A DNA stretch of 64,000 bases from Macrostomum lignano (taxonomy: Eukaryota), in contig NIVC01000464.1 in assembly GCA_002269645.1 (NCBI GenBank), forward strand, positions 124,001-188,000, in the 5' to 3' direction. A program made the position numbers and the translations under genes. Each line of letters opens with the position of its first letter. The stretch's first letter is position 1. The notes below the pieces were generated by a model. It saw only the letters and a list, made by a program, of their open reading frames with translations, made no database searches and was not told the origin of the DNA. Positions 622-64,000 of this stretch are shown here, one piece after another.

Positions 622-18022
<17,401 letters not shown>

Positions 18023-21800: not shown

Positions 21801-24276
21801 AGCTTATGTATTCTTCTTTGCTACCGAACTGATAGTAGAAAGCTGTTTTTACTAAGCATATATGCCTGAGTGGCCCAGCTAATTATTCTATACATATTAG
21901 GTCATTGCAGGAGGGGCATTGAGGCAATTCTACCCAATCCGCTGACTCCCTGGGCACATACAAGCTACCGGTAAGCCACTGTACGCGGGCACGCACTCAT
22001 ACACAGGCTTACATAGGGTGTACAGCGGGTCTTTGATTTCTAATTTCTCGGGCACACAAGCCCGAAATGAAAGTGGCCGCGCACGGAATCAAATCAGCTG
22101 TTCTGCTTTTTCGAAGATCTTCAAAGACTGTTGCCAATGCTTAATAAATTCTTCTGTTTTTGTGCTTTCGCAATTGATGCGATAGAGGCGACTGTTGCGT
22201 CACAAGTGCGTCACGTGAGTTGTAGAATCAGAGTGGCGAAAGAGTCGTCCCAAGAATCGTTGGCGCTCATGAGTCACTGAGTTGTGTCTGAATGTGATAG
22301 AGTCGCTATTGAGTCAATGAGTTGTGTCTGAATGTGATAGAGTCGCTATTGAGTCAATGAGTTGTGTCTGAATGTGATAGAGTCGCTATTGAGTCAATGA
22401 GTTGTGTCTGAATGTGATAGAGTCGCTATTGAGTCAATGAGTTGTGTCTGAATGTGATAGAGTCGCTATTGAGTCACTGAGTTGTGTCTGAAGGTGATAG
22501 AGTCGCTATTGAGTCACTGAGTTGTGTCTGAAGGTGATAGAGTCGCTATTGAGTCACTGAGTTGTGTCTGAATGTGATAGAGTTGCTATTGAGTCACTGA
22601 GTTGTGTCTGAATGTGATGGAGTCGCTATTGAGTCAATGAGTTGTGTCTGAATGTGATAGAGTCGCTATTGAGTCACTGAGTTGTGTCTGAAGGTGATAG
22701 AGTCGCTATTGAGTCACTGAGTTGTGTCTGAATGTGATAGAGTTGCTATTGAGTCACTGAGTTGTGTCTGAAGGTGATGGAGTCGCTATTGAGTCACTGA
22801 GTTGTGTCTGAATGTGATGGAGTCGCTATTGAGTCACTGAGTTGTGTCTGAATGTGATAGAGTCGCTATTGAGTCAATGAGTTGTGTCTGAATGTGATAG
22901 AGTCGCTATTGAGTCAATGAGTTGTGTCTGAATGTGATAGAGTCGCTATTGAGTCAATGAGTTGTGTCTGAATGTGATAGAGTCGCTATTGAGTCACTGA
23001 GTTGTGTCTGAATGTGATAGAGTCGCTATTGAGTCAATGAGTTGTGTCTGAATGTGATAGAGTCGCTATTGAGTCAATGAGTTGTGTCTGAAGGTGATAG
23101 AGACGCTATTGAGTCACTGAGTTGTGTCTGAATGTGATAGAGTCGCTATTGAGTCAATGAGTTGTGTCTGAATGTGATAGAGTCGCTATTGAGTCAATGA
23201 GTTGTGTCTGAATGTGATAGAGTCGCTATTGAGTCAATGAGTTGTGTCTGAAGGTGATAGAGTCGCTATTGAGTCACTGAGTTGTGTCTGAATGTGATTG
23301 AGTCGCTATTGAGTCACTGAGTTGTGTCTGAAGCGCATTTGAGTCGCTTGATAAATTAGAGTCACAGCGGCGTTTCGGCGGCATTCTCCAGTCGCTAAAG
23401 CGCTTAAGCCACTGTAGCGCTTTGTATACGTTACAGAGTCAGAGTTACAGTTACACAATAAACATTCAGTGTAGTTTATTAAATTCTAATTGCACTCTAA
23501 CTAGCCTACTGAGTTAGTAGTAGAAAGTTAAGCGTCAAAACAATGATTCTTGGCCAACTCTTGCAACTTTTACGATTCTACAACTCAAGTGACGGGCTTG
23601 TCACGCAGCAGTCGCCTCTACCGTCGTATCAAGACACATTTGAATCGTAATTAAGTCACAGGAGTCTCCCCAGAGTCACTAGAAAGTCGTTTGCAATGAC
23701 TTTTCAGCAATTCTTGTCACTGTAACATTTTCAAAGAGGTGTTACAGATGATTAAATTGTCAACTGACCAGCCGCCATCAGCTGCTGTCGCTCGTCAGCC
23801 GTCAACAATCGGCATTTGCCATCGTAGCCGGGCGTCTGCCCGGCGGCCCGTTGATGCCGACGCAAGAGCTCCAGCCGGTGCTCGGAGCAGAAGCACGGAT
23901 AGGCCAGGCCGCTATCCACTAGCCTAGCAGCGGCGTCTCTGTATTTGTCCAGCCTGTTAGACTGAACCGGCACTGAGTCTGCATTGTCCGGCCTCAGTCC
24001 TAGCCAATCCAATGACTCTAATATATCGCTAGCAGCTTCCGGTTTGCAACGCTTAGCATCCGTATCCTCTAGGCGTAATAGAAACCGGCCGTTGCTATGC
24101 CGTTTGGCGAAGGCAAAATTTACTAGAGCTGTACGAGCTCCGCCAACGTGCATGCGACCGGTGGGCGAAGGTGCAAAACGAACCACTACAGGCTGAGGCT
24201 CGCGGCAGCCGCCGCCTCCGCTGCTTGAGCAGAGCCGCAGGCGGCTGATGTGGCCAATAATTCCAGTAGATTTTCG
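18854..24276 (-). CDS. EARS2: Mitochondrial glutamyl-tRNA synthetase (class I GluRS), 4 coding exons; start codon not in the first visible exon
   Basis: Exons 24276-23769, 21390-20810, 20138-19936, 19274-18854, GT-AG with consistent phases. Motifs: VRFAPSPTGRMHVGGARTAL (HIGH), FLLRLEDTD, AYPCFCS, YDGKCR, KSDGWPVYHLASVFDD, VTHVIRGREWL, KLSKR (KMSKS-like), C-terminal LLMTGQSEGPSVREI. The N-terminal 30 codons are Arg/Ser-rich and presequence-like. Confidence 0.9.
19340..19920. repeat. 31 bp minisatellite (GAGATTCTAGCGCCAATTTAGCGCCCCAGGT), EARS2 intron 3
   Basis: Direct reading. Confidence 0.88.
20185..20800. repeat. Variable-length minisatellite with GACCCTTCGATAATCC core, EARS2 intron 2
   Basis: Direct reading. 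Confidence 0.85.
21443..21892. mobile_element. MITE-like palindromic element, copy 2 (EARS2 intron 1)
   Basis: Co-linear with 8773-9201 (AAAGCTGCCATGTACATTT, GGCCAATGTACATTA, CAATTAGCAAG, AAATAGCTTATGTATTCTTCTTTGCTAC). Confidence 0.75.
21905..22050 (-). mobile_element. Diverged fragment of the SINE family 1 central region
   Basis: CCAATCCGCTGACTCCCTGGGCACATACAAGC...GGGTGTACAGCGGGTCTTTGATTTCTAAT resembles the middle of 18225-18590. Confidence 0.55.
22275..23335. repeat. 40 bp minisatellite (GAGTCACTGAGTTGTGTCTGAATGTGATAGAGTCGCTATT), EARS2 intron 1
   Basis: About 26 units. Confidence 0.95.
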
Positions 24277-24295
24277 CTGCAGAGATATTTAGAAA
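24277..24295 (-). promoter_or_regulatory. 3' splice acceptor preceding the ATG-less first coding exon of EARS2 (candidate trans-splice acceptor)
   Basis: TTTCTAAATATCTCTGCAG|CGAAAA on the minus strand; phase 0 with the GluRS frame; in-frame TAA five codons upstream. Confidence 0.6.
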
Positions 24296-30005: not shown

Positions 30006-30269
30006 ATATTAAAATCAAAGCCATATACATAGAGTACTACACTACACCCCTATTGGAATAAATGTTGAAAACCCATGGACATGCACTTTAGAATAGTCAA
30101 ATTATTGTACTATGCTTTAGCATTATTAGAGATGTTCTAAAGGAGCATTTTCTATTGAAATTGAAATTTGATAACTTTCCAAAATCAAAATTGATATTTT
30201 CTGCCTTTCTGTAATCAAAATTTAGAAAAACAAACTTTAGTACAATTGAAACTTGGCGCACCAAGGGAG

Positions 30270-30822
30270 CCGACAAGATGGTGATCATCGCATGCTACAA
30301 CAGCTTTGGCATTATTCTCATCCACTGCATTCCTGAGGGCCAAAACATCAACCAACAATACTACCAGAGCTTCATTATTCACCATCTTTGGCCTGCCTTA
30401 TGCAAAAAGTGGCCACAGACCCTGGAACTTGGTCCACTCCTTCTGTACGACAATGCCAGTTTGCACACAGCCTGCATTGTGCAGGACCTACTGCGGGACT
30501 ACCAGTGGGAGGTGCTGCCTCATCCTCCTTACTCCCTAGACCTCAGTCCCTACAATTTTGACCTTTTTCCGAAGCTTAAGAACCAGCTCCGAGGGCATCA
30601 TTTCCATTGCCTGGATGACCTGTTCAGCAAGGTCGGCCATATTGCAAAAGACCTATGCGAATCCAGCGCTGCTGATAGCGTTCAGAAGTTGCCTGGCTGC
30701 TAAGAGCGCACAATTCAAGTCAATAGAAGTTATTTTGAAGGTTTTTGACATGTTCATTGTTCTGACACTCGTTTGTTGAAAATTAGTAGGTGTTTGCTGA
30801 AACTTTTGGGATGACCCTTGTA
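30270..30822 (+). mobile_element. 3' half of a second mariner transposase (catalytic domain) with right TIR
   Basis: ORF 30278-30703: LLYDNASLHTA...WEVLPHPPYSLDLSPYNFDLFPKLKNQLRG is the mariner DD34D C-terminal signature (last Asp replaced by Asn). Ends GAAACTTTTGGGATGACCCTTGTA. Confidence 0.85.
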
Positions 30823-35046: not shown

Positions 35047-36719
35047 TCACGCGGTTTGTTTGTCAATACCAAGATAAGCTTTCGCTCCACCAGCGAGACC
35101 CGTTCTGTCGGGATCAATTGTTTGAGCTGTCGGATCACTTTTTCCGGATTTGGATAGAGCAATGCCAGCAGCTCCAGTAGCGGCCAAGCCGGTTGTGGCA
35201 GCGCCAGCACCTATGAAGCCGATTTTCTTTTTGTGTGGACCGATAGCCCCGCCCGCTCTTTTAAAGAAGCCTCCGCTCTTTTTGCAGGGCAGAAACGGAT
35301 TCTGGCAGCCGGGATTATCCAAGTCGGCGGACTTTTTTGATTTCCCCTTTTGAGCCGCACCGGCCTTTTTACCCACGGATTTCACCAGGCCGCCCTCGTT
35401 GCAGGGAAAAAAGGGATTTTTACACCCGGGATTATCCATGTCGGTAACGCTGGACTTCCTGTTTGCGTTGCCCGGCGCGTCGCCGGCTTTCTTAGCAGAT
35501 TTCAGCTTAAAAAACGATTTCGCTCGCGATTTCACTGCAAACAAGGATTGAATAAATTATAGCAATCACAGCTACTCTCACCAACCACAGCTGCTCTCAC
35601 CAATCACAGCCTGCTCTCACCAATCACAGCCTGCTCTCACCAATCACAGCTGCTCTCACCAATCACAGCTTCTCTCACCAATCACAGCTGCTCTCACCAA
35701 TCACAGCTGCTCTCACCAATCACAGCTGCTCTCACCAATCACAGCCTGCTCTCACCAATCACAGCCTGCTCTCACCAATCACAGCTGCTCTCACCAATCA
35801 CAGCTTCTCTCACCAATCACAGCTGCTCTCACCAATCACAGCCTGCTCTCACCAATCACAGCTGCTCTCACCAATCACAGCTGCTCTCACCAATCACAAC
35901 TGCTCTCACCAATCACAGCTTCTCTCACCAATCACAGCCTGCTCTCACCAATCACAGCTGCTCTCACCAATCACAGCCTGCTCTCACCAATCACAGCTGC
36001 TCTCACCAATCACAGCTTCTCTCACCAATCACAGCCTGCTCTCACCAATCACAGCTGCTCTCACCAATCACAGCTGCTCTCACCAATCACAGCTTCTCTC
36101 ACCAATCACAGCTGCTCTCACCAATCACAGCTTCTCTCACCAATCACAGCTGCTCTCACCAATCACAGCTGCTCTCACCAATCACAGCTGCTCTCACCAA
36201 TCACAGCCTGCTCTCACCAATCACAGCTGCTCTCACCAATCACAGCTTCTCTCACCAATCACAGCCTGCTCTCACCAATCACAGCCTGCTCTCACCAATC
36301 ACAGCTGCTCTCACCAATCACAGCTTCTCTCACCAATCACAGCTTCTCTCACCAATCACAGCTGCTCTCACCAATCACAGCTTCTCTCACCAATCACAGC
36401 TTCTCTCACCAATCACAGCCTGCTCTCACCAATCACAGCTGCTCTCACCAATCACAGCTTCTCTCACCAATCACAGCTTCTCTCACCAATCACAGCCTGC
36501 TCTCACCAATCACAGCTTCCCTCGACTTCACTTCCTACTAATAAAATTATTGAATTTCTCAGACATTCAATGTGCAAATTAATAATAAAGCATTATTTCC
36601 ATAAACTCGATAAACTCACATGATTTTACTGCTTTCGGGCAGCATTGGCCGCCGCTTGGAAACTGGCTGACAATCGTGAGCAGAATAAAGTAAATTGCTA
36701 TAAAGCTTTGAGTTCGCAT
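35047..36719 (-). CDS. Secreted cationic protein A (~195 aa), unknown family, with duplicated DNPGCxNPFxPC motif
   Basis: Exon 1 36719-36620 (MRTQSFIAIYFILLTIVSQFPSGGQCCPKAVKS, signal peptide), donor T|GTGAGT. Exon 2 35534-35047 after TTGCAG, phase 1, in frame with the 165-aa ORF of the track. Confidence 0.8.
35570..36520. repeat. 19/20 bp minisatellite (CCAATCACAGCTGCTCTCA), intron of gene A
   Basis: About 48 units. Confidence 0.95.
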
Positions 36720-37139
36720 GAGAAGTCTGCCTGAGCATTTACTGGAGCTTGTACATGAAGAAATTTGTGTGGGTCTGTTGTTTTAGTTGGAAAATCAATA
36801 TTATTTCAATATTGGCCTTCGCTAGCTTGCTTGGTTATTTGGGGCAATCAGATTTTTTTCTATATCCAGAATTACTATTCAATACATATAATTAATTCAG
36901 ACCATAGATACAATTACTCTCTATCGATTGATGTAGATACTATTTTTGTAACTTGAAGATTATTTAAACAAATAAATACATAAATAGTTTACTGCTCGGC
37001 TATGACGGAAGAATCCCATGGGTTTAATTCAAGGTGAAGACGAAAGAGGTGATAGATTCCACACGCGACCTGCGAATTGCCTTTCCATCTGGCCCTCAAG
37101 TCCTTTGTAACTTCACAATAGCAATCATCTGGCCTACCT

Positions 37140-38100
37140 CCGCTCTCTACTCTCTCGTCTCATCTCCTCTCTCTCCTCTCTTTTCTTTCCTTTCATCTCT
37201 CATCTCTTCTTTCCTCTCATCTCTTCTTTCATCTCATTTCTTTCTTCATCTCTCCTCTCATCTATCATCTCATCTCTTCTTTTCTTTCATCTCTCATTTC
37301 TCATCTTATCTATCCTCTTATCTCTTCTTTCCTCTCATCTCTCATCTCATTTATCCTCTTATCTCTTCTTTCCTCTCATCTCTCATCCCTCATCTCATCT
37401 ATCCTCTCATCTCTTCTTTCATCTCTCATCTCTTCTTTCATCTCATCCCTTCTTTCATCTCTCCTCTCATCTATCATCTCATCTCTTCTTTCATCTCATC
37501 CCTTCTTTCATCTCTCCTCTCATCTATCATCTCATCTCTTCTTTCATCTCATCCCTTCTTTCATCTCTCCTCTCATCTATCATCTCATCTCTTCTTTCAT
37601 CTCATCCCTTCTTTCATCTCTCCTCTCATCTATCATCTCATCTCTTCTTTCATCTCATCTCTTCTTTCATCTCTCCTCTCATTTATCCTCTCATCTCTTC
37701 TTTCCTTTCATCTCTCATCTCTCATCTCTCATCTCATCTATCCTCTTATCTCTTCTTCCTCTCATCTCTCATCCTTCATCTCATCTATCCTCTTATCTTA
37801 TCTTTCCTCTCATCTCTTCTTTCATCCCTCAACTCTTCTTTCATCTCTCATCTCTTCTTTCCTCATCTCCTCTTTCATCTCATTTCTTCTTTCATCTCTC
37901 CTCTCATCTATCATATCATCTCTTCTTTCCTTTCATCTCTCATCTCATTTATCCTCTCATCCCCTCTTTCCTTTCATCTCTCATATTATCTATCCTCTTA
38001 TCTCCGCTTTCCTTTCATATTTGATCTCATCTATACTCTTATCTCCTCTTTCCTTTAATCTCTCATCTCATCTATCCTCTTATCTTCTCCTTCCTCTTCT
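37140..38100. repeat. Pyrimidine-rich low-complexity (TCATC/TCT) tract between divergent genes A and B
   Basis: Direct reading. Confidence 0.9.
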
Positions 38101-38427
38101 AAATCTAAGATTCTAATGTCAGGCTGTTTTGATGACGCTGTAGGCTTTTTACAATAAATAATTTGACATAGGCTGTGTCAAAACACAATTTTAACAAGCC
38201 CACCTACTCTCAGTTTCTCCTGTTTGCTTCTGATCGCATTTTAGATGAGCGGCGTCTTTCTTAAGATGCCAATTTAAAATTGTCTATGGCAATTTATTGT
38301 CAAACCAACGAAATTTATTTATTGCCAACAAAAATTTTTCGTAATCTTCGTAGAAATATCGGTTTAATCTGTTCTTCAACAGCCCTACAGGAGTGTCTGT
38401 TTAAAAAATAACTTAACTGCAACCTAA

Positions 38428-40099
38428 ATGGGATGCATAAGATTAGCATTGCTATTTAGCATTGTGCTGGTGATCCTCATCGAACCTGGTGAAGGCTGTG
38501 TCAAGAAATTGAAGGCTTTGAAAGGTGGTAAGTAGTCAGTCTTGCAGTTGGCAATGAAATTGGTAAAACTTGAGACTGTTCGAATTCATACGGCCTTTTT
38601 TAACACGCTCGTACTGAGATCAACGCGGGAGGGAGCTGTCGTGCGATTCGGGCACAGAAAGTGTACATGCCTGATGATTAGACAGTCAAAGGGCCGCTGT
38701 ACACCCAAGGACAACTTAAGTAGAAGAACGCAACACTCGAAATCTAATGGTAAATATTTTGACGGCAACTTTTCGCCGAAAAATACACTACAGAGATAAG
38801 AGGATTTAATCTTTGTAGCACAAAAATTGTTATTGCTTTTGATAGGAGGCAGATCCAGTGTTCATATTTTGATATGTTGTGCCTTTTTTTATTGCTCTAT
38901 CGATATTCATAAAGCTTTTCGTCCAGAAATAGTTTTAAAGGAAGGTTTCACCGGAAAAATACATTAAGGAGATAGGAAATTTCACGATTTTCAACACTAA
39001 AACAGTGATTGGGTCTCTTAACAGTGTCAGAGAAAGTTCTAATCACACTATTTTGTGCCTCACATGCTGCTCTCACGACGCATTAATCGATTTTTCATGT
39101 TAAATTGGTCTGTCACTTGAAAAAAACGTTTAAAATAATTACAAGACCAATATAAAGGCGAAAAGTTGCCTTCAAAACATTTACCAATAGATTTCGAGTG
39201 AGGCGCGCTTGTGTACACCCTGTGTGAGGCGCGCTTGTGTACACCCTGTGTGAGGCGCGCTTGTGTACACCCTGTGTGAGGCGCGCTTGTTTACACCCTG
39301 AGTGAGGCGCGCTTGTGTACACCCTGTGTGAGGCGCGCTTGTGTACACCCTGTGTGAGGCGCGCTTGTGTACACCCTGTGTGAGGCGCGCTTGTGTACAC
39401 CCTGTGTGAGGCGCGCTTGTGTACACCCTGTGTGAGGCGCGCTTGTGTACACCCTGTGTGAGGCGCGCTTGTGTACACCCTGTGTGAGGCGCGCTTCTGT
39501 ACACCCTGTGTGAGGCGCGCTTGTGTACACCCTGTGTGAGGCGCGCTTGTGTACACCCTGTGTGAGGCGCGCTTGTGTACACCCTGTGTGAGGCGCGCTT
39601 GTGTACACCCTGTGTGAGGCGCGCTTCTGTACACCCTGTGTGAGGCGCGCTTGTGTACACCCTGTGTGAGGCGCGCTTCTGTACACCCTGTGTGAGGCGC
39701 GCTTGTGTACACCCTGTGTGAGGCGCGCTTGCATGCAGAATCGCCTCAGCGCTGCGGCTGTGGGAAGATGTCGCCGAAGCGTATCCCAATTATTATTGCT
39801 ATTATTTTCTAAATGCCACTGGGCATTCATTCATTTCATTCTAACAAAACTTCGCGCCCCCAGCTTTCAAGAGAGTCGGCAAGGTGTTCAAAATAGCCAG
39901 ACGCCCAAAAGCCGCCAAAGTCATTGCGAATTCTGCGGACGACGTTGGCAAGGTGGCCAAGAAGTCCAAGAGCTTCAGCACGGCGCGCTCGCTCCTCATT
40001 GGTGGCACGGTTGGAGGTGCGGCACTGGGGGGCGCCGTGTACGTGGGGGAAAAAGAGAAGAAAAAAGGCATGAGCAGCGGTTCGTACGTCACCCACTAA
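38428..40099 (+). CDS. Secreted cationic peptide B (~111 aa), amphipathic helix plus glycine-zipper segment
   Basis: Exon 1 38428-38527 (MGCIRLALLFSIVLVILIEPGEGCVKKLKALKG), donor G|GTAAGT. Exon 2 39864-40099 after CCCCCAG: AFKRVGKVFKIARRPKAAKVIANSADDVGKVAKKSKSFSTARSLLIGGTVGGAALGGAVYVGEKEKKKGMSSGSYVTH-stop. Confidence 0.85.
39197..39730. repeat. 26 bp minisatellite (GAGGCGCGCTTGTGTACACCCTGTGT), intron of gene B
   Basis: About 20 near-perfect units. Confidence 0.95.
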
Positions 40100-40609
40100 G
40101 AGACCCTGCACAGCCATGCATGAGGAAATAATGTGTACTTTGCGGTATTCTTATACTCGAAATACTCGTTGCGTATTCAATTGTTAAGTATATAGCCAAT
40201 TTACCAAAAATTTTTCTTTTAAAATTTAATTGTAAATCAGCACAGTTTCTTTTAAATTAGATCCAGATCTACGTAGTTTGCCAAAATTGCACTTTGAGCA
40301 GTTGAAACGTGTTTTTGTAAATTTTGTTTTACTGGATGTTATTTTTACCGGTATGCCATGGGCAGAGGACTCGTGACTTTAGTTTTAACATATAATATAA
40401 ATAAAGCTTCTTAGACAGTTTCAGTTGTGCTTCACAGATTATATCTCATATATTCTTATAGTGACTATGTACTCAATTCTTTTAAGCTTGCACAGTAGTC
40501 TTCTAACTTAAGTTTCGTTTTTATTTGGTTCTCCACTTATGGCTCTGCACTCGAGGACCTCGCTGCCACGCCTGTCTACCATCCTGCGACTTTAATTGGC
40601 GGGTCGCGT

Positions 40610-40985
40610 AATCACCCACCTTGGTAATCACCCACCTTGGTAATCACCCACCTTGGTAATCACCCTACTTGGTAATCACCCACCTTGGTAATCACCCACC
40701 TTGGTAATCACCCACCTTGGTAATCACCCACCTTGGTAATCACCCACCTTGGTAATCGTCCACCTTGGTAATCATCCACCTTGGTAACCACCCACCTTGG
40801 TAATCACCCACCTTGGTAATCACCCACCTTGGTAATCACCCTACTTGGTAATCACCCACCTTGGTAATCACCCACCTTGGTAATCACCCACCTTGGTAAT
40901 CACCCACCTTGGTAATCACCCACCTTGGTAATCGTCCACCTTGGTAATCATCCACCTTGGTAACCACCCACCCATCACCATCCGC
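40610..40985. repeat. 16 bp minisatellite (TTGGTAATCACCCACC) between genes B and C
   Basis: Direct reading. Confidence 0.93.
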
Positions 40986-41400
40986 CTTGGTGATCAGAAT
41001 AAAATAAACCACAGCGTAATAATGTCATTTATTCGAATATAAACATTTAAATGCATTGCAAAGGTGGTCTTTGCTTAAGTTTTACTTAATTCTATCTCGA
41101 ACAAAACTGCAAGACGACTAATTAAAATTATACTGGTGCAGTGAATAAGAGCTGATTGTTTGCTGCAGTATTTTGTTACTTTTTTAATAAAGGGACTTTT
41201 TTATTATTATTCGGCAGTCAGATCATGTCTATGGTAATCTACTATCAACCGAAATGCTTGAAAATCGCTAAAAATTTGATTGCCGAAAAAAGCAACTTGA
41301 GCCTCGATGCATCACCTGCCGGTTGTAGTTGACATCTTGGTAGAAATATCACTTCAATAGAGCAGTCATACAAGAGAGTAGAGAATAACTGGGACCTATA

Positions 41401-43119
41401 ATGGGTTACATAAGATTAGCATTGTTATTTACCATTGTGCTGGTGATCCTCATCGAACCTGGCGATGGCTGCTTTAGGAAATTGAAAGGTGGTAAGTAGT
41501 CAGCCTTGCTTATGTGCCTTAAAATTAGAAATTATACTATAATGCATAAGAGAATTACCCAATTGGCATTAGTATCAAAATTGGTTTACAGTAGTGCTCT
41601 TGCGGAATCACCCGGTTGGTTCAGGGCTCATGGGGGGAATCACCCGGTTGGTTCAGGGCTCATGAGGAATCACCCAGTTGGTTCAGGGCTCATGAGGAAT
41701 CACCCAGTTGGTTCAGGGCTCATGAGGAATCACCCAGTTGGTTCAGGGCTCATGAGGAATCACCCGGTTGGTTCAGGGCTCATGAGGAATCACCCAGTTG
41801 GTTCAGGGCTCATGAGGAATCACCCAGTTGGTTCAGGGCTCATGAGGGGAATCACCCAGTTGGTTCAGGGCTCATGAGGAATCACCCAGTTGGTTCAGGG
41901 CTCATGAGGAGTCACCCAGTTGGTTCAGGGCTCATGAGGAATAACCAAGTTGGTTCAGGGCTCATGAGGAGTCACCCAGTTGGTTCAGGGCTCATGAGGA
42001 ATCACCCAGTTGGTTCAGGGCTCATGAGGAGTCACCCAGTTGGTTCAGGGCTCATGAGGAATCACCCAGTTGGTTCAGGGCTCATGAGGAGTCACCCAGT
42101 TGGTTCAGGGCTCATAGGGAATCACCCAGTTGGTTCAGAGCTCATAGGGAATCACCTAGTAGGTTCAGACCTCTAGAGGAATCACCCAGTTGGTTCAGGG
42201 CTCATGAGGAGTCACCCAGTTGGTTCAGGGCTCATAGGGAATCACCCAGTTGGTTCAGAGCTCATAGGGAATCACCTAGTAGGTTCAGACCTCTAGAGGA
42301 ATCACCCGGTTAATTGATTCAGGGCTCATAGGGAATCACCCATTTGGTTCGGGGCGTATGGGGGAGTTGCCGAGTGGCCTCGAATGCGCTGCTAAGATTT
42401 AATTCTGAAAGAAAGAATGCTTATATCATAGGCCGAAAAGTTTTGATATTGGCGCACTTAAATGTGCTCGGGACTTTGTGCTCTTTGCTATGAATATTGA
42501 TGATGATTGATTATCCCTGCCGTAATGGAAATATGTGCAACCGACAGCACAGCCGCAGCTATCTGAAGGCTGCGTGCGGCTGTTCAGTCCAAGGACTGGG
42601 GGGTCGCCACACACAGCCTCAATTACCCCAGCTAATGCTGGCACTCATTTTACAGCTGGGTGAACTGAAGCTATGCAGAGGTTAAGTGTCTTGCTCAAGG
42701 ACACAAATTGTTCCAGTAGGATCAGGAATCGAACCCCCGACCTTGAACCACTAGGCTACAGTCCCCTGTGAATATTATTACAACTATAGTATAGGCAGGC
42801 ACTGATCCGAAACTGAGAGCCGCAACCCCAACCCGCTTCTAATTCGCACGCAGCGGTCAAGGCGGTTGGCAGGCGCGTCGGTCGAGTATTCGGACGCGGA
42901 AAGAAGGCGCCGAAAGCGGCCGCCGATATTGCCCAAAGCGCCGAGAAGGTGGGCAAAACAGCTAAAAAAGGCCCCAGTGCGACAAAAACAGCCGGAATCA
43001 GTGTTGGCACTGGAATGCTTGCCGCCGGTACCATTGGTGCTGGCAGTTTGGCCTACACAAATAACAAGAAGAATCGGATGCAAAGCGAGAGCGCTCCGCC
43101 TCCTGTCACATACAAATAG
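41401..43119 (+). CDS. Secreted cationic peptide C (~118 aa), paralog of B
   Basis: Exon 1 41401-41491 (MGYIRLALLFTIVLVILIEPGDGCFRKLKG) is nearly identical at DNA level to exon 1 of B; donor G|GTAAGT. Exon 2 42854-43119 after CACGCAG: AVKAVGRRVGRVFGRGKKAPKAAADIAQSAEKVGKTAKKGPSATKTAGISVGTGMLAAGTIGAGSLAYTNNKKNRMQSESAPPPVTYK-stop. This frame is absent from the ORF track. Confidence 0.85.
41605..42345. repeat. 30 bp minisatellite (GGAATCACCCAGTTGGTTCAGGGCTCATGA), intron of gene C
   Basis: Direct reading. Confidence 0.93.
42525..42757 (-). mobile_element. tRNA-headed SINE, family 2, copy 2 (intron of gene C)
   Basis: Shares ATGTGCAACCGACAGC-CAGCCGCAGCTAT, CTCAATTACCCCAGCTAA-GCTGG and GAATCGAACCCCCGACCTT with the reverse complement of 172-365. 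Confidence 0.7.
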
Positions 43120-44086
43120 AAGCCGGCCACGGACAAAAATGTTGGCTGCGACCTTACAATCTCTACGCTTAGTACACCATGACAGGCATTTACTATTTCT
43201 TTCCAGTTTTCATGTGTTAATTGAGTGCAATTTGATTTCCTCTACATTTTAAGGCCTATGTAATGCATATATACTCGTAGTTGTTTCATTAGCATTGGCA
43301 ACTTTTGTATTTAGTTAATCTGATGCTGGAAAAATGCTTAAACACTTTCAACAATTACAGTTAGACAGAATATAGACTCATGTTCCACTAAGTGTGGCGG
43401 CAGTGAATTTCGAAAAACTTCACTTGACTTTTTTATTAATTGCTTATCAGGTTAAAAGTACATGTGCACACCGTGGCTATGGAGAGGAAGATCACAGAAA
43501 AGCGATAGCAACACTGCTTCCAAGGGGGGTTGTGCCTGCCCGAGGAAAAAACAAACCAAACTTGCTAAGTACTTGATAAGTCAACAATGGAACCTCGTGG
43601 CGAGGACAGCCTAAGTAAAGTACATTCGATAAGTTTCCAAGTACTTGAATGTAGAGACAGGCGTGTACTTTGTAAACTTTTCAAGTCGATTGAACTTGGA
43701 CAAAAGCATTGCATATACTGTTTAAGTTCATGACAATGATACTTTGCAAACTTGGTTAGTCAACAATGTCATCCAAGTGCATGGTTGACTTTAAAAGTTT
43801 AGCATGTGTTTTTTTCCGGTTGGCATCTCTGGGACTAAAGTTCGCAAAGTTTTTTTTGTTAAAATTTACGTTTTGATCGATTGCGAACTAGCAGAGTTTG
43901 CTAGCCATAAAGCATGCACAGTTAATAGTTAAAAGATTGCCCACAGTCTACAGCAGCCACCCTATCTATGGGCTCACTCACAGGTAAAGAAGCGGCTGAG
44001 AAAATCATAGTTAGGTAGACAAAAGTGCACTTTGCGAGACGCGGGCTAGAAGAAGAAGCTCGGACTGCAAATCAGATTAGCTTGAA

Positions 44087-44635
44087 ATGGTGCTATTGAA
44101 ATGGTCGATGAAATGCCTGTTGCTGGCAGTCATTCTGCTAGCTGTGCTGCCGGACTATAGCAGCGGATGCAAAGCGGCGGTCAATAAGGGTGAGTTGGCA
44201 ATTCCAACCGCATGTTTTCATTCAGTAAAAACAGTAAAAAGGACTATAAGAGGGGAATTTCATGCCATTAACAGCCGTGATGACAAACCCTTAAAAAGTC
44301 AGTCAGTTTATGAACAGACTCTGACAAAACACACTTTTCCCCATGCTATATTAACAGTGAAAGAGTTCTACAAGTCTTACACGCTAAAGAAAAAGCCGAA
44401 AGAGGAAACTGACGAAGCCGAAAAGAAGAAAAAGCAGGAGGCAGAAGAAAAAGAATACAAGAAGAAATTGGACGAGGCCAAAGCGAAAATGCGACAGCGA
44501 AACAAACAGCTCCTTGAAACCATAGCAACCGAGCGCACCAAGCAGGAGTCTCTGCTGGAGCAGCGGAAGAAGAAAGGCGAGAAGAAGATCGCAGGCATTG
44601 TGGCCACCACCACTGGTACGCAAATAATCCTCTAG
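44087..44635 (+). CDS. Secreted Lys/Glu-rich coiled-coil protein D (~126 aa spliced), unknown family
   Basis: Signal peptide MVLLKWSMKCLLLAVILLAVLPDYSSG followed by C. Probable intron 44190-44357 (G|GTGAGT ... AACAG|TG, 168 nt, no stop). Exon 2 encodes KEFYKSYTLKKKPKEE...EYKKKLDEAKAKMRQRNKQLL...GIVATTTGTQIIL-stop. Confidence 0.8.
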   Translation: MVLLKWSMKCLLLAVILLAVLPDYSSGCKAAVNKGELAIPTACFHSVKTVKRTIRGEFHAINSRDDKPLKSQSVYEQTLTKHTFPHAILTVKEFYKSYTLKKKPKEETDEAEKKKKQEAEEKEYKKKLDEAKAKMRQRNKQLLETIATERTKQESLLEQRKKKGEKKIAGIVATTTGTQIIL

Positions 44636-45062
44636 ATTGCGGAGACCGCTCCGCAACCATCAGCTGCAGTTTTATTTATTAAGGACGAAACCGAGATAAT
44701 TGACAGTTTAAGGCGCAGCTCAAGACAAAAGCCTGAGAAGTTTTGTTAATATTCTAGAGTTCTACTGGTCAGGAAATTTAATTTCGTTTACTTTACTGGA
44801 TCGGTTTATAAATAATACACAGGACAGTGTTTTAACTCATTTTTAATTGCCTGTTTTATTGCAATTTCTCATTCAATTAGATGTATTGCGATTTTCAAGA
44901 GGATAGAGAAGTACGAGCTATTTGTGCAGCACTGTATTGTCTATTGTGGTATTAGAGAGAAAAAACTGCTATGGCAATTACCGCTGGCACGGACTGCTCG
45001 GTTTCAGCTTGCAGGAGTGTAAGCTGCCGGGTAGGATTAATTATGGAGGGCGCTGAAGCGTC

Positions 45063-45955
45063 AGCACCAGGATATTTAGCACCAGTGGTTTTAGCACCAG
45101 TGGCTTTAGCACCAGGGGCTTTAGCACCAGTGGCTTTAGCACCAGTGGTTTTAGCACCAGTGGTTTTAGCACCAGGGGCTTTAGCACCAGGGGCTTTAGC
45201 ACCAGGGGCTTTAGCACCAGGGGCTTTAGCACCAAGGGCTTTAGCACCAGGGGCTTTAGCACCAGGGGCTTTAGCACCAGGGGCTTTAGCACCAGGGGCT
45301 TTAGCACCAGGGGCTTTAGCACCAGGGGCTTTAGCACCAATGGTTTTAGCACCAGTGGCTTTAGCACCAGGGACTTTAGCACCAGTGGCTTTAGCACCAG
45401 TGGCTTTAGCACCAGTGGCTTTAGCACCAGTGGCTTTAGCTCCAGTGGCTTTAGCACCAATGGTTTTAGCACCAGTGGCTTTAGCACCAGGGACTTTAGC
45501 ACCAGTGGCTTTAGCACCAGTGGCTTTAGCACCAGTGGTTTTAGCACCAGTGGTTTTAGCACCAGTGGCTTTAGCACCAGTGGTTTTAGCACCAGTGGTT
45601 TTAGCACCAGTGGCTTTAGCACCAAGTGCTTTAGCACCAGTGGTTTTAGCACCAAATGCTTCAGCACCAGGGGCTTTAGCACCAGGGGCTTTAGCACCAG
45701 GGGCTTTAGCACCAGGGGCTTTAGCACCAGGGGCTTTAGCACCAGGGGCTTTAGCACCAGGGGCTTTAGCACCAGGGGCTTTAGCACCAGGGGCTTTAGC
45801 ACCAGGGGCTTTAGCACCAGGGGCTTTAGCACCAGGGGCTTTAGCACCAGGGGCTTTAGCACCAGGGGCTTTAGCACCAGGGGCTTTAGCACCAGGGGCT
45901 TTAGCACCAGGGGCTTTAGCACCAGGGGCTTTAGCACCAGGGGCTTTAGCACCAG
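45063..45955. repeat. 15 bp minisatellite (GCTTTAGCACCAGGG/GTG)
   Basis: About 59 units; source of the GAKAP, LAPGA and LVLKP ORFs. Confidence 0.95.
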
Positions 45956-46500
45956 AGACGATTGCATGGAAAGGCGGAAGGCCATGCTGCCACCAGTCCA
46001 GTTGAACGCGGAGCTCGCCCGCCACGGGAATCCGGCGATGACACCCATTGATGGTGTTGGTGACGTCAATTCGAGCTCGCAGAAAGACTCGAGCGGGGCG
46101 AGCCACCTTGCAAAAACCAGCCGATTTTGCCCACCAGCTTTTGAAGTTGAAGCTTTGACAGACTCTTAGCGCTCAAACCTCCACGCAGCAACATCCGCAG
46201 CTCATCTGTCTTGCTCTGCGGCAGGGATAGCAGCTAGACCGGATGTGCTGTCGATTTGCACTCCCAGGAATGTGATACACGTAGCAGGTGGGCTGGTATT
46301 TTCCCAATCGATGCAGCTAATCCCAGCGTGGGAGGCAAGTCGTATGAGCTTCTAAAAAAACAACAACGCACACCGCCGGGGAACAGACTACAGTTCACAA
46401 AGGTTGGTGTCGGATCAGTCTTCTCAGCGCTGGCTCTCTGAAGGCGGCTACAGCGTGCACCTGGCCAATCACCCCAGCGTAATCCAGCTAGCAATCCGCG
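45956..46500 (-). pseudogene. DIRS-like (tyrosine recombinase retrotransposon) RT/RNase H junction fragment
   Basis: Frameshifted pieces LGLAASIGK, PATCITFLGVQIDST, LQLQKLVGKIGWF, VARPARVFLR...ELRVQLDWWQHGLPPFH resemble the DIRS RT thumb and connection region as I recall it. Confidence 0.55.
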
Positions 46501-46609
46501 AAGCACATCCGGAAGTACAACACAATTAGAATAAATAAAATGAAGGTATAAAAGTGGGAACATTAAGTCAATATTTGCTAGTATGAACTCGAAATGTGAG
46601 TAAAGGAAA

Positions 46610-47780
46610 CGACAGTGTACGTCAATATTGTGGGTCAATATCGTACGTCAATATCAGTCACTTCGCCCTGGAGTGCACCCTGGCCAAAGTCCTAACACCA
46701 TCCTTCGAAACCGCATTCAACCCATCATCAACCAGAGGCTTCTCAATATCCAGAACGGCTTCCAACCTGGACGGTCAACAGCAAAAACAAGTCGCTGCGG
46801 TCCGGTGCATCATAGACACCTGCAAGACTCGCCAAAAGGCGGTGTCAATTGTTTTTGCAGATTTGTGCAAAGCTTTTGACTCAGTCAGCCGGGCGGCCAG
46901 GCCATTGCGTAGCTCCTCCAGCAGCATGGAGTTTCTCAGATGCTGGTCCAGGCGATCATGGACCTCTACAGCTCATCCAAGGCGCTTTCGTCTAGACTGA
47001 CCACGGCCCTAAAGCTGAATTGACAACCACTTCCGCAAAGCGACACCTGTTTGTATTCGTCATCCTGATCGACTTCGTCATGCGGTTGGCTCTGCGCGAT
47101 GAAGACGGCTATGAAGTGGTGCTTCGCCGTAGCTCCCGCTTTGCCTGCGTCAAGCCGACCTGCCTCGCCTGCGCCGACGACCTGGCGCTGACCTGCTGCA
47201 GTCTCAAAGCTGCGCAGACGGCGGTGAGTCGGCGGACCAACGAGGGGAAGCGCGTGGGGCTCCACATCAACTACGGCAAGGCAGAGGTGCTGCATGTTGG
47301 CATTGCCAACTCTCCACTGCTGCTTCTGCCGGACAGCAACACCATCGCCCTGTGCAACCAGTTCAAGTATCTGGGGTGTCCTGGTCTCTGACCCGGATGT
47401 CATTGTCAACAACCGCAAGCACAGCCTGGTGGGCCTCCCACCTTCTCCGCTCCATCTTCAACTACTGGCTCGCCACCGACAGCCTGAACGTCGCCCTATT
47501 CCGCTCGGCAGTTGAGACGGTGCTGACCTACGGGCTGCTGGAAGCTGTTCCCATGACTGCCACTCGTCAGGCGAGCTTGGAGGGCTGCCATCGCCACCTC
47601 ATGCACAATGCCCTGGGCATCCGGTTCCCGAGCGCGTGAGCAACGCCGAGCTGGCGGCCCGGACCCGCGTGGTCGCAGAGACGACGCCAGATGTTGATCG
47701 GCCTCTGCCTGCGTGCCCACACACGGGGCACCGGGCCCCAGCTCACCGACCTGCTGCTCAGCCACCACTCTGACGGACAC
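46610..47780 (+). pseudogene. Decayed non-LTR (RTE-like) reverse transcriptase fragment
   Basis: ILRNRIQPIINQRLLNIQNGFQPGRST, SIVFADLCKAFDSVSR, LFVFVILIDFVMR, LACADDLAL, GLHINYGKAEVL, FKYLG, LFRSAVETVLTYG, spread over several frames. Related to 33369-34310. Confidence 0.75.
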
Positions 47781-48467
47781 TGTACTCTCTAACTTGCAGT
47801 CTTACCCCCCCCACTGTCTGCAGCTAGGATGGACTCAGCTGTTTTCCACCAGCAGGTGCTTCACTGACCCCCCTGTGCCAGCATCACTGACCCCCTGTGC
47901 CAGCGTTATAGATTTAGAGATTTAAACTTATTTGGAGCCACTGCAGGAGACTGTAAATTTCAGTGCAATGTGTGAATGCGGGCAGTGTGCGGTATCTTGG
48001 TTTCTGTTGCAGTTTTTCAAAGTTTTTAACTACCTCGTTGACCGAAGATGGCCAGACCGATGATGGTTGAAGAGGAAAAACCGATGGGATGGGTCGGAGA
48101 AGATTTTGTAGTTATTTTAGACACGCTTAAATAGGTCACAGTTAGTTTGCAATCGAGTGGTTGAGAGTGAGAAAGTGTTTTGGCTGCTAGAACGAGTTGG
48201 ATTCAAGCTGACATTTGTTGGCTTTAACATGTAGCTGAGTGAATGACGAATTCCAATCACTCTTCACCCGCGCGGTTCCCTGCATCTTTTTACCCAGAAA
48301 CAAAAAGTAAATAAGTGGAATTTTACGCGCGCACTGAAGCCTGAGTGAGAAGGCCATAGACTATACTCTAGGGCGAGCTGTCAAAGTGTAGTTTACTAGG
48401 AAAGTAAAGCTGCGAGGCTAAGCCCATCTATCTTATCGGCAACGCTCCTTTCGGATGCCAACAAGCA

Positions 48468-48974
48468 ATGGCATTTTTCAGATACCTAGCATTGCCGGCA
48501 ATCTTGTTCGCGGTTTTTGTACAATACAGCGAAGGATGCAAGAAACCGGCTCCTGTGCAGCAGGGTGAGTGGGTCAAAGTTGTGCCGCCGTTACTATTAT
48601 GTTATTATTGGACCAGCGTCTTTAAAGTAGCAATCTGTAGTACCTGATTCCATGCTTATTGAACCCGCCCCACAGTTCAGAAGAATGTTGAAGCAAACTA
48701 TGAGCTAGAACAACGGCTGGCGCGAGAAAAGCACGAGCGTGACGAGGTCGAGAGGTTGCGGCGAAAAAACGAACAAACGAGGAAAGAAGAGCAATACAAG
48801 AAGGAATTGAAGGAGGCAAAAGCGAAAATGAAGGAGCGCAAAGAGAAGATTCTAAACTTGGTCGCGGCCCAGCGATCATACCAGATTGCTCTGATGAAGA
48901 AGCGCAAAAAGAACGGGGCTCAGAAAATATACGGTGTCGACGCGGAGGTAACAGGCACCCAGCTTGTCATATGA
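48468..48974 (+). CDS. Secreted Lys/Glu-rich coiled-coil protein E (~131 aa), paralog of D
   Basis: Exon 1 48468-48564 (MAFFRYLALPAILFAVFVQYSEGCKKPAPVQQ), donor G|GTGAGT. Exon 2 48676-48974 after CCCACAG: VQKNVEANYELEQRLAREK...EQYKKELKEAKAKMKERKEKILNLVAAQRSYQIALMKKRKKNGAQKIYGVDAEVTGTQLVI-stop, which aligns with the C-terminal half of D. Confidence 0.82.
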
Positions 48975-50702: not shown

Positions 50703-51284
50703 TTATTTCGACAGGCTGTTCAGAAGGCCGAGCAGCCGGTCCAGTGTGCTCACAATGGCATCAGTCTTGGCGCAGTCCGAACTTTCCAGCAGGCGAGCCT
50801 GATAGTAATCAATCCGGTCAAGAGTGGCCGTCCGCAGTCTCTCTTCAACACAGACTCGGTCCTTGCCAGCGGCAGCCTGTGTTTGGCTGCGCGATGACGC
50901 CTGCGAGCTGGCAACGGAGGCGGCGGCTGCGGCGGCCTCTCTGGCGTGGACTCGGGCGGCCGACTCCGACTGAGCCGGGTCGTCTTTGCTAACGTCGGAC
51001 TCGAGCTCGCGACAGGCGATGCAATAGTTGCCACCGCCGTTGCTCACCTCCATGAGGATGGTGCCGCAGTCGGGGCACACGTGGTCCAGCATTTTCCAGC
51101 CTTTGAGCAGGTACTCGCCCATCCGTTTGGCGATCTTGTCCGAGCGCTCGCGGCGAGCTTTCAAAACTTTCTGCTCCGCCTCGGTTGGCGGGCGCCACTC
51201 GGCATCGAAGCTGGCGTCGCCATTGTCGGCAGTTGATGATGAAGATGCGGCTGCTTGTTCGCGGAGTAGACTGCGAAAATCCAT
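50703..51284 (-). CDS. ZNRD2: Zinc ribbon protein SSSCA1/ZNRD2 (autoantigen p27 family), single coding exon
   Basis: RRERSDKIAKRMGEYLLKGWKMLDHVCPDCGTILM...YCIACRE (CxxC...CxxC) is the SSSCA1 signature. ATG start, stop at 50703. Confidence 0.88.
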   Translation of the reverse strand: MDFRSLLREQAAASSSSTADNGDASFDAEWRPPTEAEQKVLKARRERSDKIAKRMGEYLLKGWKMLDHVCPDCGTILMEVSNGGGNYCIACRELESDVSKDDPAQSESAARVHAREAAAAAASVASSQASSRSQTQAAAGKDRVCVEERLRTATLDRIDYYQARLLESSDCAKTDAIVSTLDRLLGLLNSLSK

Positions 51285-51304
51285 GCTGCTGCCGGGCTGC
51301 GGGT

Positions 51305-51730
51305 CAGCGAGTTCAATCAGTCATAGAGGGGGGGTCAGCGAGTTCAATCAGTCATAGAGGGGGGGGGTCAGCGAGTTCAATCAGTCATAGAGGGGGGTCA
51401 GCGAGTTCAATCAGTCATAGAGGGGGGGTCAGCGAGTTCAATCAGTCATAGAGGGGGGTCAGCGAGTTCAAGCAGTCATAGAGAGGGGGGGTCAGCGAGT
51501 TCAATCAGTCATAGAGGGGTGGGTGTCAGTGAATTCCATCAGTCATAAAGGGGATGTCAGTGAGTTCCATCAGTCATAGAGGGGATGTCAGTGAATTCCA
51601 TCAGTCATAAAGGGGATGTCAGTGAATTCCATCAGTCATAAAGGGGATGTCAGTGAGTTCTATCAGTCATAAAGTGGATGTCAGTGAGTTCCATCAGTCA
51701 TAAAGTGGATGTCAGTGAATTCCATCAGTG
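51305..51730. repeat. ~30 bp minisatellite (GTCAGCGAGTTCAATCAGTCATAGAGGGGG) immediately upstream of ZNRD2
   Basis: Direct reading; variable G-run length. Confidence 0.88.

Positions 51731-60829: not shown

Positions 60830-64000
<3,171 letters not shown>

Follow-up and report, generated by a model that had tools for sequence, protein, structure and literature searches.

We analysed a stretch of 64,000 nucleotides (nt) from the genome of the flatworm Macrostomum lignano (contig NIVC01000464.1, C464 below, bases 124001-188000; "the window"), in which positions 35,047 to 48,974 hold five two-exon genes, here named A to E. Judged by sequence rules, the first exon of each encodes a classical signal peptide, and the products are small and strongly cationic. 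The reading we lean towards is that these are genuine, transcribed two-exon genes that fall into three groups, and that they specify lineage-restricted, fast-diverging secretory cationic proteins, two of which, B and C, possibly serve in host defence. Splicing at the strongest donor and acceptor sites gave the following models, each listed with the GenBank protein that is identical to the spliced product and is labelled hypothetical:

Gene A, minus strand: exon 1 36719-36620 and exon 2 35534-35047, 195 amino acids (aa); Mlig010768 (PAA82524)
Gene B, plus strand: exon 1 38428-38527 and exon 2 39864-40099, 111 aa; Mlig005534 (PAA82525)
Gene C, plus strand: exon 1 41401-41491 and exon 2 42854-43119, 118 aa; Mlig014360 (PAA82526)
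Gene D, plus strand: exon 1 44087-44189 and exon 2 44358-44635, 126 aa; Mlig025199 (PAA82527)
Gene E, plus strand: exon 1 48468-48564 and exon 2 48676-48974, 131 aa; Mlig007023 (PAA82528)

All five models join in frame, with phase-1 introns, first exons of 100, 100, 91, 103 and 97 nt in A to E, GTGAGT or GTAAGT as splice donors and AG at every acceptor. The original prediction, made from the bare sequence, had proposed five models with these coordinates, first exons of 91-103 nt and phase-1 GT-AG introns, all of which were reproduced, and the exact matches to GenBank proteins confirm that the genes are real, spliced and coding. The 2017 GenBank annotation of the assembly was built from transcript evidence only, namely StringTie/TACO assemblies of RNA sequencing (RNA-seq) data and a de novo transcriptome, with open reading frames (ORFs) called by TransDecoder (PMC5730564). 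Since the annotation derives from transcripts, the junctions of A to E are already supported by RNA, and for the same reason the genes are not hidden, as had been claimed, but merely uncharacterised: they are already annotated, tidy, ordinary orphan secreted-protein genes. They lie next to each other, with consecutive protein accessions and no further annotated gene among them. Exact-protein look-ups for independent cDNA contigs of the products gave no match.

Furthermore, the whole window was scanned mechanically on both strands for first exons of this kind, which had to begin with ATG and encode a hydrophobic core followed by small residues at -1 and -3, with a GTRAG donor no more than 12 codons away. 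Only the five first exons of A to E were recovered (D with two possible ATGs), and none was found in one reversed and ten shuffled control sequences. The exon-1 pattern is thus beyond chance. Between paralogues, the proportion of nonsynonymous differences (pN) lies well below that of synonymous differences (pS), at 0.345 vs 0.705 for B and C and 0.37 vs 0.85 for D and E; the frames have therefore been maintained as proteins.

Genome-wide searches were performed in the 764.4-Mb M. lignano assembly of 5269 contigs. The five-gene block occurs there three times (C464, C4000 and C1374) with its gene order kept and exons that are 95-100% identical, which fits the known redundancy of this neopolyploid genome (PMC5730564). 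No further paralogues were detected in the genome, each gene being present only as its three syntenic copies, so that the family sizes per genome copy are one for A, two for B/C and two for D/E. ORFs and GT-AG sites are intact in 3/3 copies, and the exon alignments are free of gaps while the introns vary in length; the models are thus backed independently by the three copies. We counted 19 nonsynonymous and 7 synonymous differences between the window and C1374, with a pN/pS of about 1.1 for gene E, which points to relaxed or diversifying evolution, the counts being small and selection tests underpowered. In A, B and D, the window and C4000 (L009-L011) have identical copies and C1374 (L012-L014) a different one; for C and E, the copies on C4000 and C1374 are identical or nearly so and the window copy differs. 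This mosaic of identities suggests recombination or gene conversion between the copies, or a mosaic assembly.

The first exons carry the following features:

36620-36719, minus strand: exon 1 of A, predicted signal peptide MRTQSFIAIYFILLTIVSQFPSGG, then QCCPKAVKS; donor GTGAGT
38428-38527, plus strand: exon 1 of B, predicted signal peptide ending EPGEG|C, then VKKLKALKG; donor GTAAGT
41401-41491, plus strand: exon 1 of C, predicted signal peptide ending EPGDG|C, then FRKLKG
44087-44189, plus strand: exon 1 of D, predicted signal peptide ending DYSSG|C, then KAAVNK; alternative ATG at 44108
48468-48564, plus strand: exon 1 of E, predicted signal peptide ending QYSEG|C, then KKPAPVQQ

By sequence rules, 5/5 products have an n-, an h- and a c-region, with small residues at -1 and -3; the N-terminal core follows a basic n-region and has a 19-residue hydropathy mean of 1.6-2.4. 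Cleavage sites were placed by the (-3,-1) rule only. In B to E, the predicted cleavage makes a Cys the first residue of the mature protein, of which it is also the sole Cys. The letters quoted for the signal-peptide ends in the original prediction are present in all five genes, but for A, SGG|QCC fits the (-3,-1) rule better than its GGQC|C and would leave a mature protein that starts with (Q)CC. The mature proteins of 88-170 aa have isoelectric points of 9.75-10.98 and net charges of +12 to +21, in agreement with the very basic bodies ascribed to them earlier. A to E are probably secreted.

A Pfam scan of the five products gave nothing credible, B and C retrieving only a spurious DUF3482 at expect values (E) up to 1. 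With C, A and E as queries, a word-indexed search of 5.8 billion proteins returned matches confined to M. lignano, and an exhaustive hmmsearch of 1.84 billion cluster representatives with a B/C profile yielded B, C and an older chimeric model and nothing else. Searches of PDB sequences yielded nothing meaningful, and a Foldseek comparison of the model of E with the PDB gave no match. As far as current collections show, which may lack other Macrostomum species, A to E would thus be lineage-restricted among the available proteomes; that they are lineage-specific and hold no recognisable domain had both been foreseen.

Two database labels were followed up and discarded. For D, the UniRef label "DUF148 domain-containing" was not confirmed: at E up to 1, neither D nor E has PF02520 among its Pfam hits; likewise, a genome-wide six-frame search with PF02520 gave no match at C464:168087-168632 (D) or 172468-172974 (E) at E up to 10. 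The label "Gly-zipper_YMGG" belongs to P0011 and not to B or C. P0011 is an older 120-aa M. lignano UniRef model, a chimera joining exon 2 of B and exon 2 of C, with its end out of frame. Glycine-zipper families such as PF13441 gave no Pfam match to A, B or C.

The five genes are three sequence groups on present comparisons, with A as a singleton beside the pairs B/C and D/E, and not one proven family. B and C are paralogues with 48% identity (E 7e-27) and D and E with 41% (E 4e-20), and each pair is the result of a local tandem duplication. No significant similarity was found for the other pairs (A-B E 0.075, the rest E >=1.9), so that the single tandemly diversified family of the original prediction is not demonstrated, and the demonstrable families count one, two and two genes. 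Profile-profile comparison (hhalign) of B/C with A gave a probability of 0.2%; that of B/C with D/E aligned 25 columns only, covering the signal peptide and the Gly-Cys, with a probability of 21% and P 0.001. What all five have in common is their linkage as neighbours and their architecture, in which a first exon of 91-103 nt is joined to a second one across a phase-1 GT-AG intron. Secreted-protein genes in general are biased towards a phase-1 intron after the signal-peptide exon (PMC1626468), so this design is weak evidence of kinship.

It is nevertheless possible, in our estimate with a little less than an even chance, that tandem duplication of a single ancestral two-exon gene gave rise to all five, the mature exon having diverged past recognition while the design of exon 1 was kept. 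The adjacency with consecutive accessions would fit such an origin, as would the common architecture with its phase-1 intron 6-9 codons after the Cys. The first mature Cys in B/C and D/E and the (Q)CC in A suggest that exon 1 has a common origin or that the groups answer to the same functional requirement; Gly-Cys at the predicted cleavage site recurs in two otherwise unrelated groups, and it is there and in the signal peptide that hhalign aligns B/C and D/E at P = 0.001. Moreover, B and C illustrate how exon 2 can shed every trace of DNA similarity even though exon 1 remains 88% identical. However, similarity across the groups is not significant beyond the signal peptide, signal peptides are alike through composition alone, and phase-1 introns near cleavage sites are over-represented in secreted-protein genes generally (PMC1626468). 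In addition, exon 1 has diverged as much as exon 2 between D and E, and the three groups have no promoter k-mers in common.

In B and C the two exons have diverged very unequally; their second exons are as follows:

39864-40099, plus strand: exon 2 of B, encoding the rest of an amphipathic cationic helix, a Lys-rich linker, the Gly-zipper segment LLIGGTVGGAALGGAVYVG, KKK and a short tail
42854-43119, plus strand: exon 2 of C, a paralogue of exon 2 of B by protein, with undetectable DNA similarity

At the DNA level the two first exons are 88% identical, and alignable sequence is confined to 38414-38545 and 41386-41509, starting 14 nt upstream and ending 18 nt inside the intron. The signal part has a synonymous divergence of 0.18, the mature part one of 0.85 (saturated). 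A conserved signal combined with a hyper-diverged mature part is typical of fast-evolving secreted effector families; local gene conversion could explain the conservation of exon 1 equally well.

AlphaFold predicts a helix in B and C directly after the Cys, at residues 24-44, which comprises about 21 residues with a charge around +8. The hydrophobic moment of this helix is 0.66 in B and 0.73 in C, values reached by 71 and 15 of 2000 composition-preserving shuffles, respectively; on the same scale cecropin A has 0.66. The helix is followed by a Pro/Gly break, the Lys-rich linker, a segment of 19-21 Gly, Ala, Val and Leu residues, a basic cluster and a short polar tail. Consecutive small-xxx-small motifs are found in this segment (GTVGGAALG and ALGGAVYVG in B, GMLAAGTIG and GTIGAGSLA in C) and in A (AATGAAGIA). 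The segment is not predicted to be helical and, measured against the cecropin plan, lies about 30 residues further on. With a summed Hessa free energy of +3.5 to +4.2 kcal/mol, the second hydrophobic segment is marginal in A, B and C. The segment of B and C could be a weak membrane anchor or the membrane-inserting helix of a soluble peptide.

Gene A differs from the other four in its second exon:

35047-35534, minus strand: exon 2 of A, encoding a cationic region, two copies of DxDNPGC[KQ]NPF[FL]PC, a Gly/Ala-rich hydrophobic segment and a polar tail

The hydrophobic segment, at residues about 138-160, is like that of B and C. Each of the two Cys-x6-Cys motifs is bounded by RK, KK or KR sites, and DNPGC[KQ]NPF[FL]PC is unique to gene A in the 764-Mb genome, where C-x-NPF-x-PC turned up elsewhere only as chance occurrences or inside a tandem repeat. 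A could thus be imagined as a pro-peptide precursor, neuropeptide, hormone or toxin-like, from which dibasic cleavage would free two related disulfide-looped peptides. The predicted signal peptide, the occurrence of the motif twice between dibasic sites and its restriction to A speak for this. The motif recalls C-x6-C peptides such as allatostatin-C. At 16% Lys+Arg, however, chance should by itself produce dibasic sites; prohormones do not typically have so long a Gly/Ala-rich C-terminal half, and for conservation of the peptides there is no orthologue to compare. Altogether we hold a precursor of this kind to be decidedly unlikely.

The second exons of D and E encode proteins of a different build:

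44358-44635, plus strand: exon 2 of D, a Lys/Glu-rich helical region ending in TGTQIIL
48676-48974, plus strand: exon 2 of E, a predicted helix of about 83 residues with the conserved C-terminus TGTQLVI

In the AlphaFold model a continuous helix spans residues 29-111, with a predicted local distance difference test score (pLDDT) >90 in the centre, and the conserved C-terminus TGTQ(I/L)(I/V)(L/I) forms a low-confidence hairpin. Pairs of opposite charge at i/i+4 number 18 and 16, compared to 11.3 +/- 2.6 and 9.2 +/- 2.3 expected. A heptad hydrophobic seam is absent, the occupancy of a and d positions being no better than in shuffles. By prediction, D and E have the properties of the ER/K single alpha-helix (SAH) class and look like such a helix rather than a coiled coil.

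Under the reading that we lean towards, the proteins would enter the secretory pathway, where the lone N-terminal Cys would probably form an intermolecular disulfide and so give a dimer or a tether, and the basic bodies would bind polyanionic extracellular targets such as microbial membranes, mucus or granule matrix. B and C would act as membrane-active host-defence peptides made of an amphipathic cationic helix, a hinge and a Gly/Ala-rich hydrophobic segment; D and E would contribute long charged ER/K-type helices with a conserved TGTQ-hydrophobic C-terminus, and A two Cys-x6-Cys loop motifs between dibasic sites. B and C are possibly the best host-defence candidates of the cluster. A role in rhabdites or mucus would also be compatible with all five, because flatworm rhabdite-forming cells stain acidophilic, which implies basic contents (PMC3001876). 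The boldest form of the host-defence idea, namely that B and C, and perhaps all five, are the first flatworm-specific family of membrane-active cationic host-defence peptides to be described, dimerised by a disulfide through the N-terminal Cys and combining a cecropin-like helix with a glycine zipper, and that all five genes arose and diversified in situ from one signal exon, appears unlikely to us.

Several points weigh against the favoured interpretation. The structural model of B and C is of low confidence (pLDDT 52), and their mature parts are much longer than classical linear antimicrobial peptides and have no anionic pro-piece. The helix of D and E is not amphipathic, the cleavage sites of all five proteins are rule-based predictions, and few differences could be counted between the genome copies. 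The exhaustive homology search covered B and C only, while A and E went through the word-indexed search. Neither the five Mlig identifiers nor characteristic peptide strings were matched in the searchable full-text literature, and the identifiers were not found in the supplements of PMC5730564, PMC5816591, PMC5946080, PMC12896417, PMC12732829, PMC6410801 and PMC7336406. Finally, the second hydrophobic segment of A, B and C, marginal on the Hessa scale, could anchor these proteins in a membrane.

On an alternative view, A, B and C would not be secreted but would cross the membrane once as small type I proteins, each with its cationic part as the ectodomain, the Gly-zipper as the transmembrane helix and a short tail in the cytoplasm. 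In its favour, the second hydrophobic stretch of all three comprises about 19-23 residues with a 19-residue hydropathy mean of 1.27-1.53, it holds the small-xxx-small motifs, and the basic cluster that follows it in B and C (KKK, KKNR) fits the positive-inside rule. The Hessa energies, in contrast, are unfavourable or marginal for insertion by the translocon, AlphaFold places no helix there and no Pfam glycine-zipper family is matched, so that we consider a membrane topology rather unlikely. A reproductive origin of the secretions, as prostate or seminal-fluid or as egg or shell-gland proteins, would agree with orphan genes that carry signal peptides and show relaxed or fast evolution, and transcripts of the prostate-containing tail region of M. 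lignano are enriched for secretory signals, with reproduction genes evolving fast (PMC7336406). The identifiers are, however, missing from 3.0 million characters of the supplements of that study and from the germline and neoblast tables of PMC5816591, which is weak evidence in both cases; we take this assignment for A to E to be quite unlikely.

That the five are annotation artefacts or non-coding transcripts with chance ORFs, or else horizontally acquired bacterial glycine-zipper lipoprotein genes, is extremely improbable. It is true that all are labelled hypothetical and have no homologues, that Gly-Cys at the end of the signal superficially resembles a lipobox and that one UniRef model bears the label "Gly-zipper_YMGG"; this model is the fusion of the second exons of B and C (P0011). 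Chance ORFs do not agree with a pN well below pS, with ORFs and splice sites intact in 3/3 copies or with scan controls of 0. A bacterial lipoprotein acquired by horizontal transfer was rejected, as the B/C profile retrieved self hits only among 1.84 billion mostly prokaryotic proteins and the genes contain spliceosomal introns.

Upstream of B and C, one short element stands out:

38345-38360, plus strand: 16-nt element TCTTCGTAGAAATATC, 68-83 nt upstream of the start codon of B

In the form TCTT[C/G]GTAGAAATATC it is common to B (38345-38360) and C (41335-41350), 51-83 nt before the start codons, within upstream DNA that is otherwise diverged, and is a candidate core-promoter or regulatory site. 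It was not found in A, D or E, and no promoter motif or k-mer common to the groups A, B/C and D/E was detected.

The window is packed with tandem repeats and transposon remains, and the introns of the five genes show this as well (window lengths refer to C464):

35535-36619, minus strand: intron of A, 1085 nt, mostly a 19-nt tandem repeat in about 50 copies; 950 nt in C4000, 1327 nt in C1374
38528-39863, plus strand: intron of B, 1336 nt, with a 26-nt tandem repeat in about 20 copies; 1053 nt in C4000, 1065 nt in C1374
41492-42853, plus strand: intron of C, 1362 nt, with a 30-nt tandem repeat in about 25 copies and a repeat like a short interspersed element (SINE); 1390 nt in C4000, 1142 nt in C1374
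44190-44357, plus strand: intron of D, 168 nt, in frame and free of stops; 168 nt in C4000, 169 nt in C1374
48565-48675, plus strand: intron of E, 111 nt; 113 nt in C4000, 113 nt in C1374

The three long introns consist mostly of repeat, with arrays at 35563-36517 (A), 39198-39731 (B) and 41596-42355 (C), and their lengths differ among the copies because the number of repeat units differs. Further arrays fill intergenic spacers at 37150-38100, 40608-40972 and 45063-45955. The SINE-like interspersed repeat in the intron of C (42540-42747, about 208 bp) has >1400 first-look candidates genome-wide; among the matches listed, 37 copies outside the three syntenic ones are 89-96% identical, and ARAGORN called no tRNA in it. 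Unspliced D keeps a 184-codon frame open (44081-44635), whereas in C1374 the spliced form alone is open because the intron there measures 169 nt.

A decayed reverse-transcriptase remnant lies between D and E at about 46200-47800, with a weak RVT_1 match at 46996-391 and frames broken over several ORFs. In the other two genome copies, most of the remnant (about 45.6-47.7 kb) is matched at about 98%; the insertion therefore predates their divergence. On the plus strand, 61100-64000 is a 967-codon open frame running off the end of the window, which is a retroelement pol gene in view of its reverse-transcriptase (E 1e-30) and RNase H (E 9e-13) domains, and a DDE_3 transposase fragment at 30215-30703 is weakly matched, with an E of 4e-5 that falls short of the gathering score. 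At 3174-5505, a (GACA)n microsatellite of about 614 copies produces large artefactual ORFs in several frames. An Rfam scan of the window gave no match, and no tRNA was found between 34 and 50 kb. As had been proposed, the cluster is set among ordinary genes, which on either side are:

23752-24288 (23.7 kb), minus strand: exon of a class I Glu/Gln-tRNA synthetase
50703-51320 (50.7 kb), minus strand: SSSCA1/autoantigen-p27 homologue

Overall, the effectors of innate immunity and of gland secretion are almost unknown in free-living flatworms. To our knowledge, M. lignano is the sole flatworm with routine transgenesis, and a compact cluster of short, highly expressed-looking orphan genes with simple promoters lends itself to easy tagging, knock-down and assay. 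For B and C, the present analysis offers a testable antimicrobial-peptide hypothesis. Should they prove antimicrobial, or should a gland or rhabdite cell type be recognisable by these proteins, the outcome would be new markers and a case study of the rapid birth and divergence of secreted proteins; otherwise A to E are ordinary lineage-specific hypothetical proteins, of which the M. lignano genome has thousands.

When compared with known systems, D and E resemble the nematode SXP/RAL-2 proteins (ANIS5_cation-bd, PF02520, formerly DUF148) in being small, probably secreted, helical and rich in Lys and Glu, but do not match their profile. With ER/K SAH domains they share a long predicted helix in which about 60% of the residues are charged or Gln and opposite charges pair at i/i+4 more often than expected. 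Known SAH domains are intracellular spacers, as in myosins and caldesmon, whereas in D and E a signal peptide precedes the helix, the net charge is +12 and the helix makes up nearly the whole protein. In Hedgehog and Spitz, an N-terminal Cys exposed by signal-peptide cleavage is N-palmitoylated by HHAT/Rasp. The predicted first mature Cys of B to E with basic residues nearby recalls this arrangement, as a resemblance and not as homology, and a disulfide-linked dimer is the simpler reading.

With the cecropin-type peptides of insects, nematodes and tunicates, B and C share a signal peptide, an amphipathic cationic helix, a Pro/Gly hinge and a Gly/Ala/Val-rich segment. There is no match in sequence or to Pfam PF00272, the mature B and C proteins measure 88-95 aa instead of about 35 aa, and they possess an extra Lys-rich linker, a polar tail and an N-terminal Cys. 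Frog-skin antimicrobial precursors and conotoxins combine a conserved signal exon with a hyper-variable mature exon. Although these form large superfamilies and B/C have two members per genome copy, the conserved signal exon of B and C and their saturated mature exon follow the same pattern.

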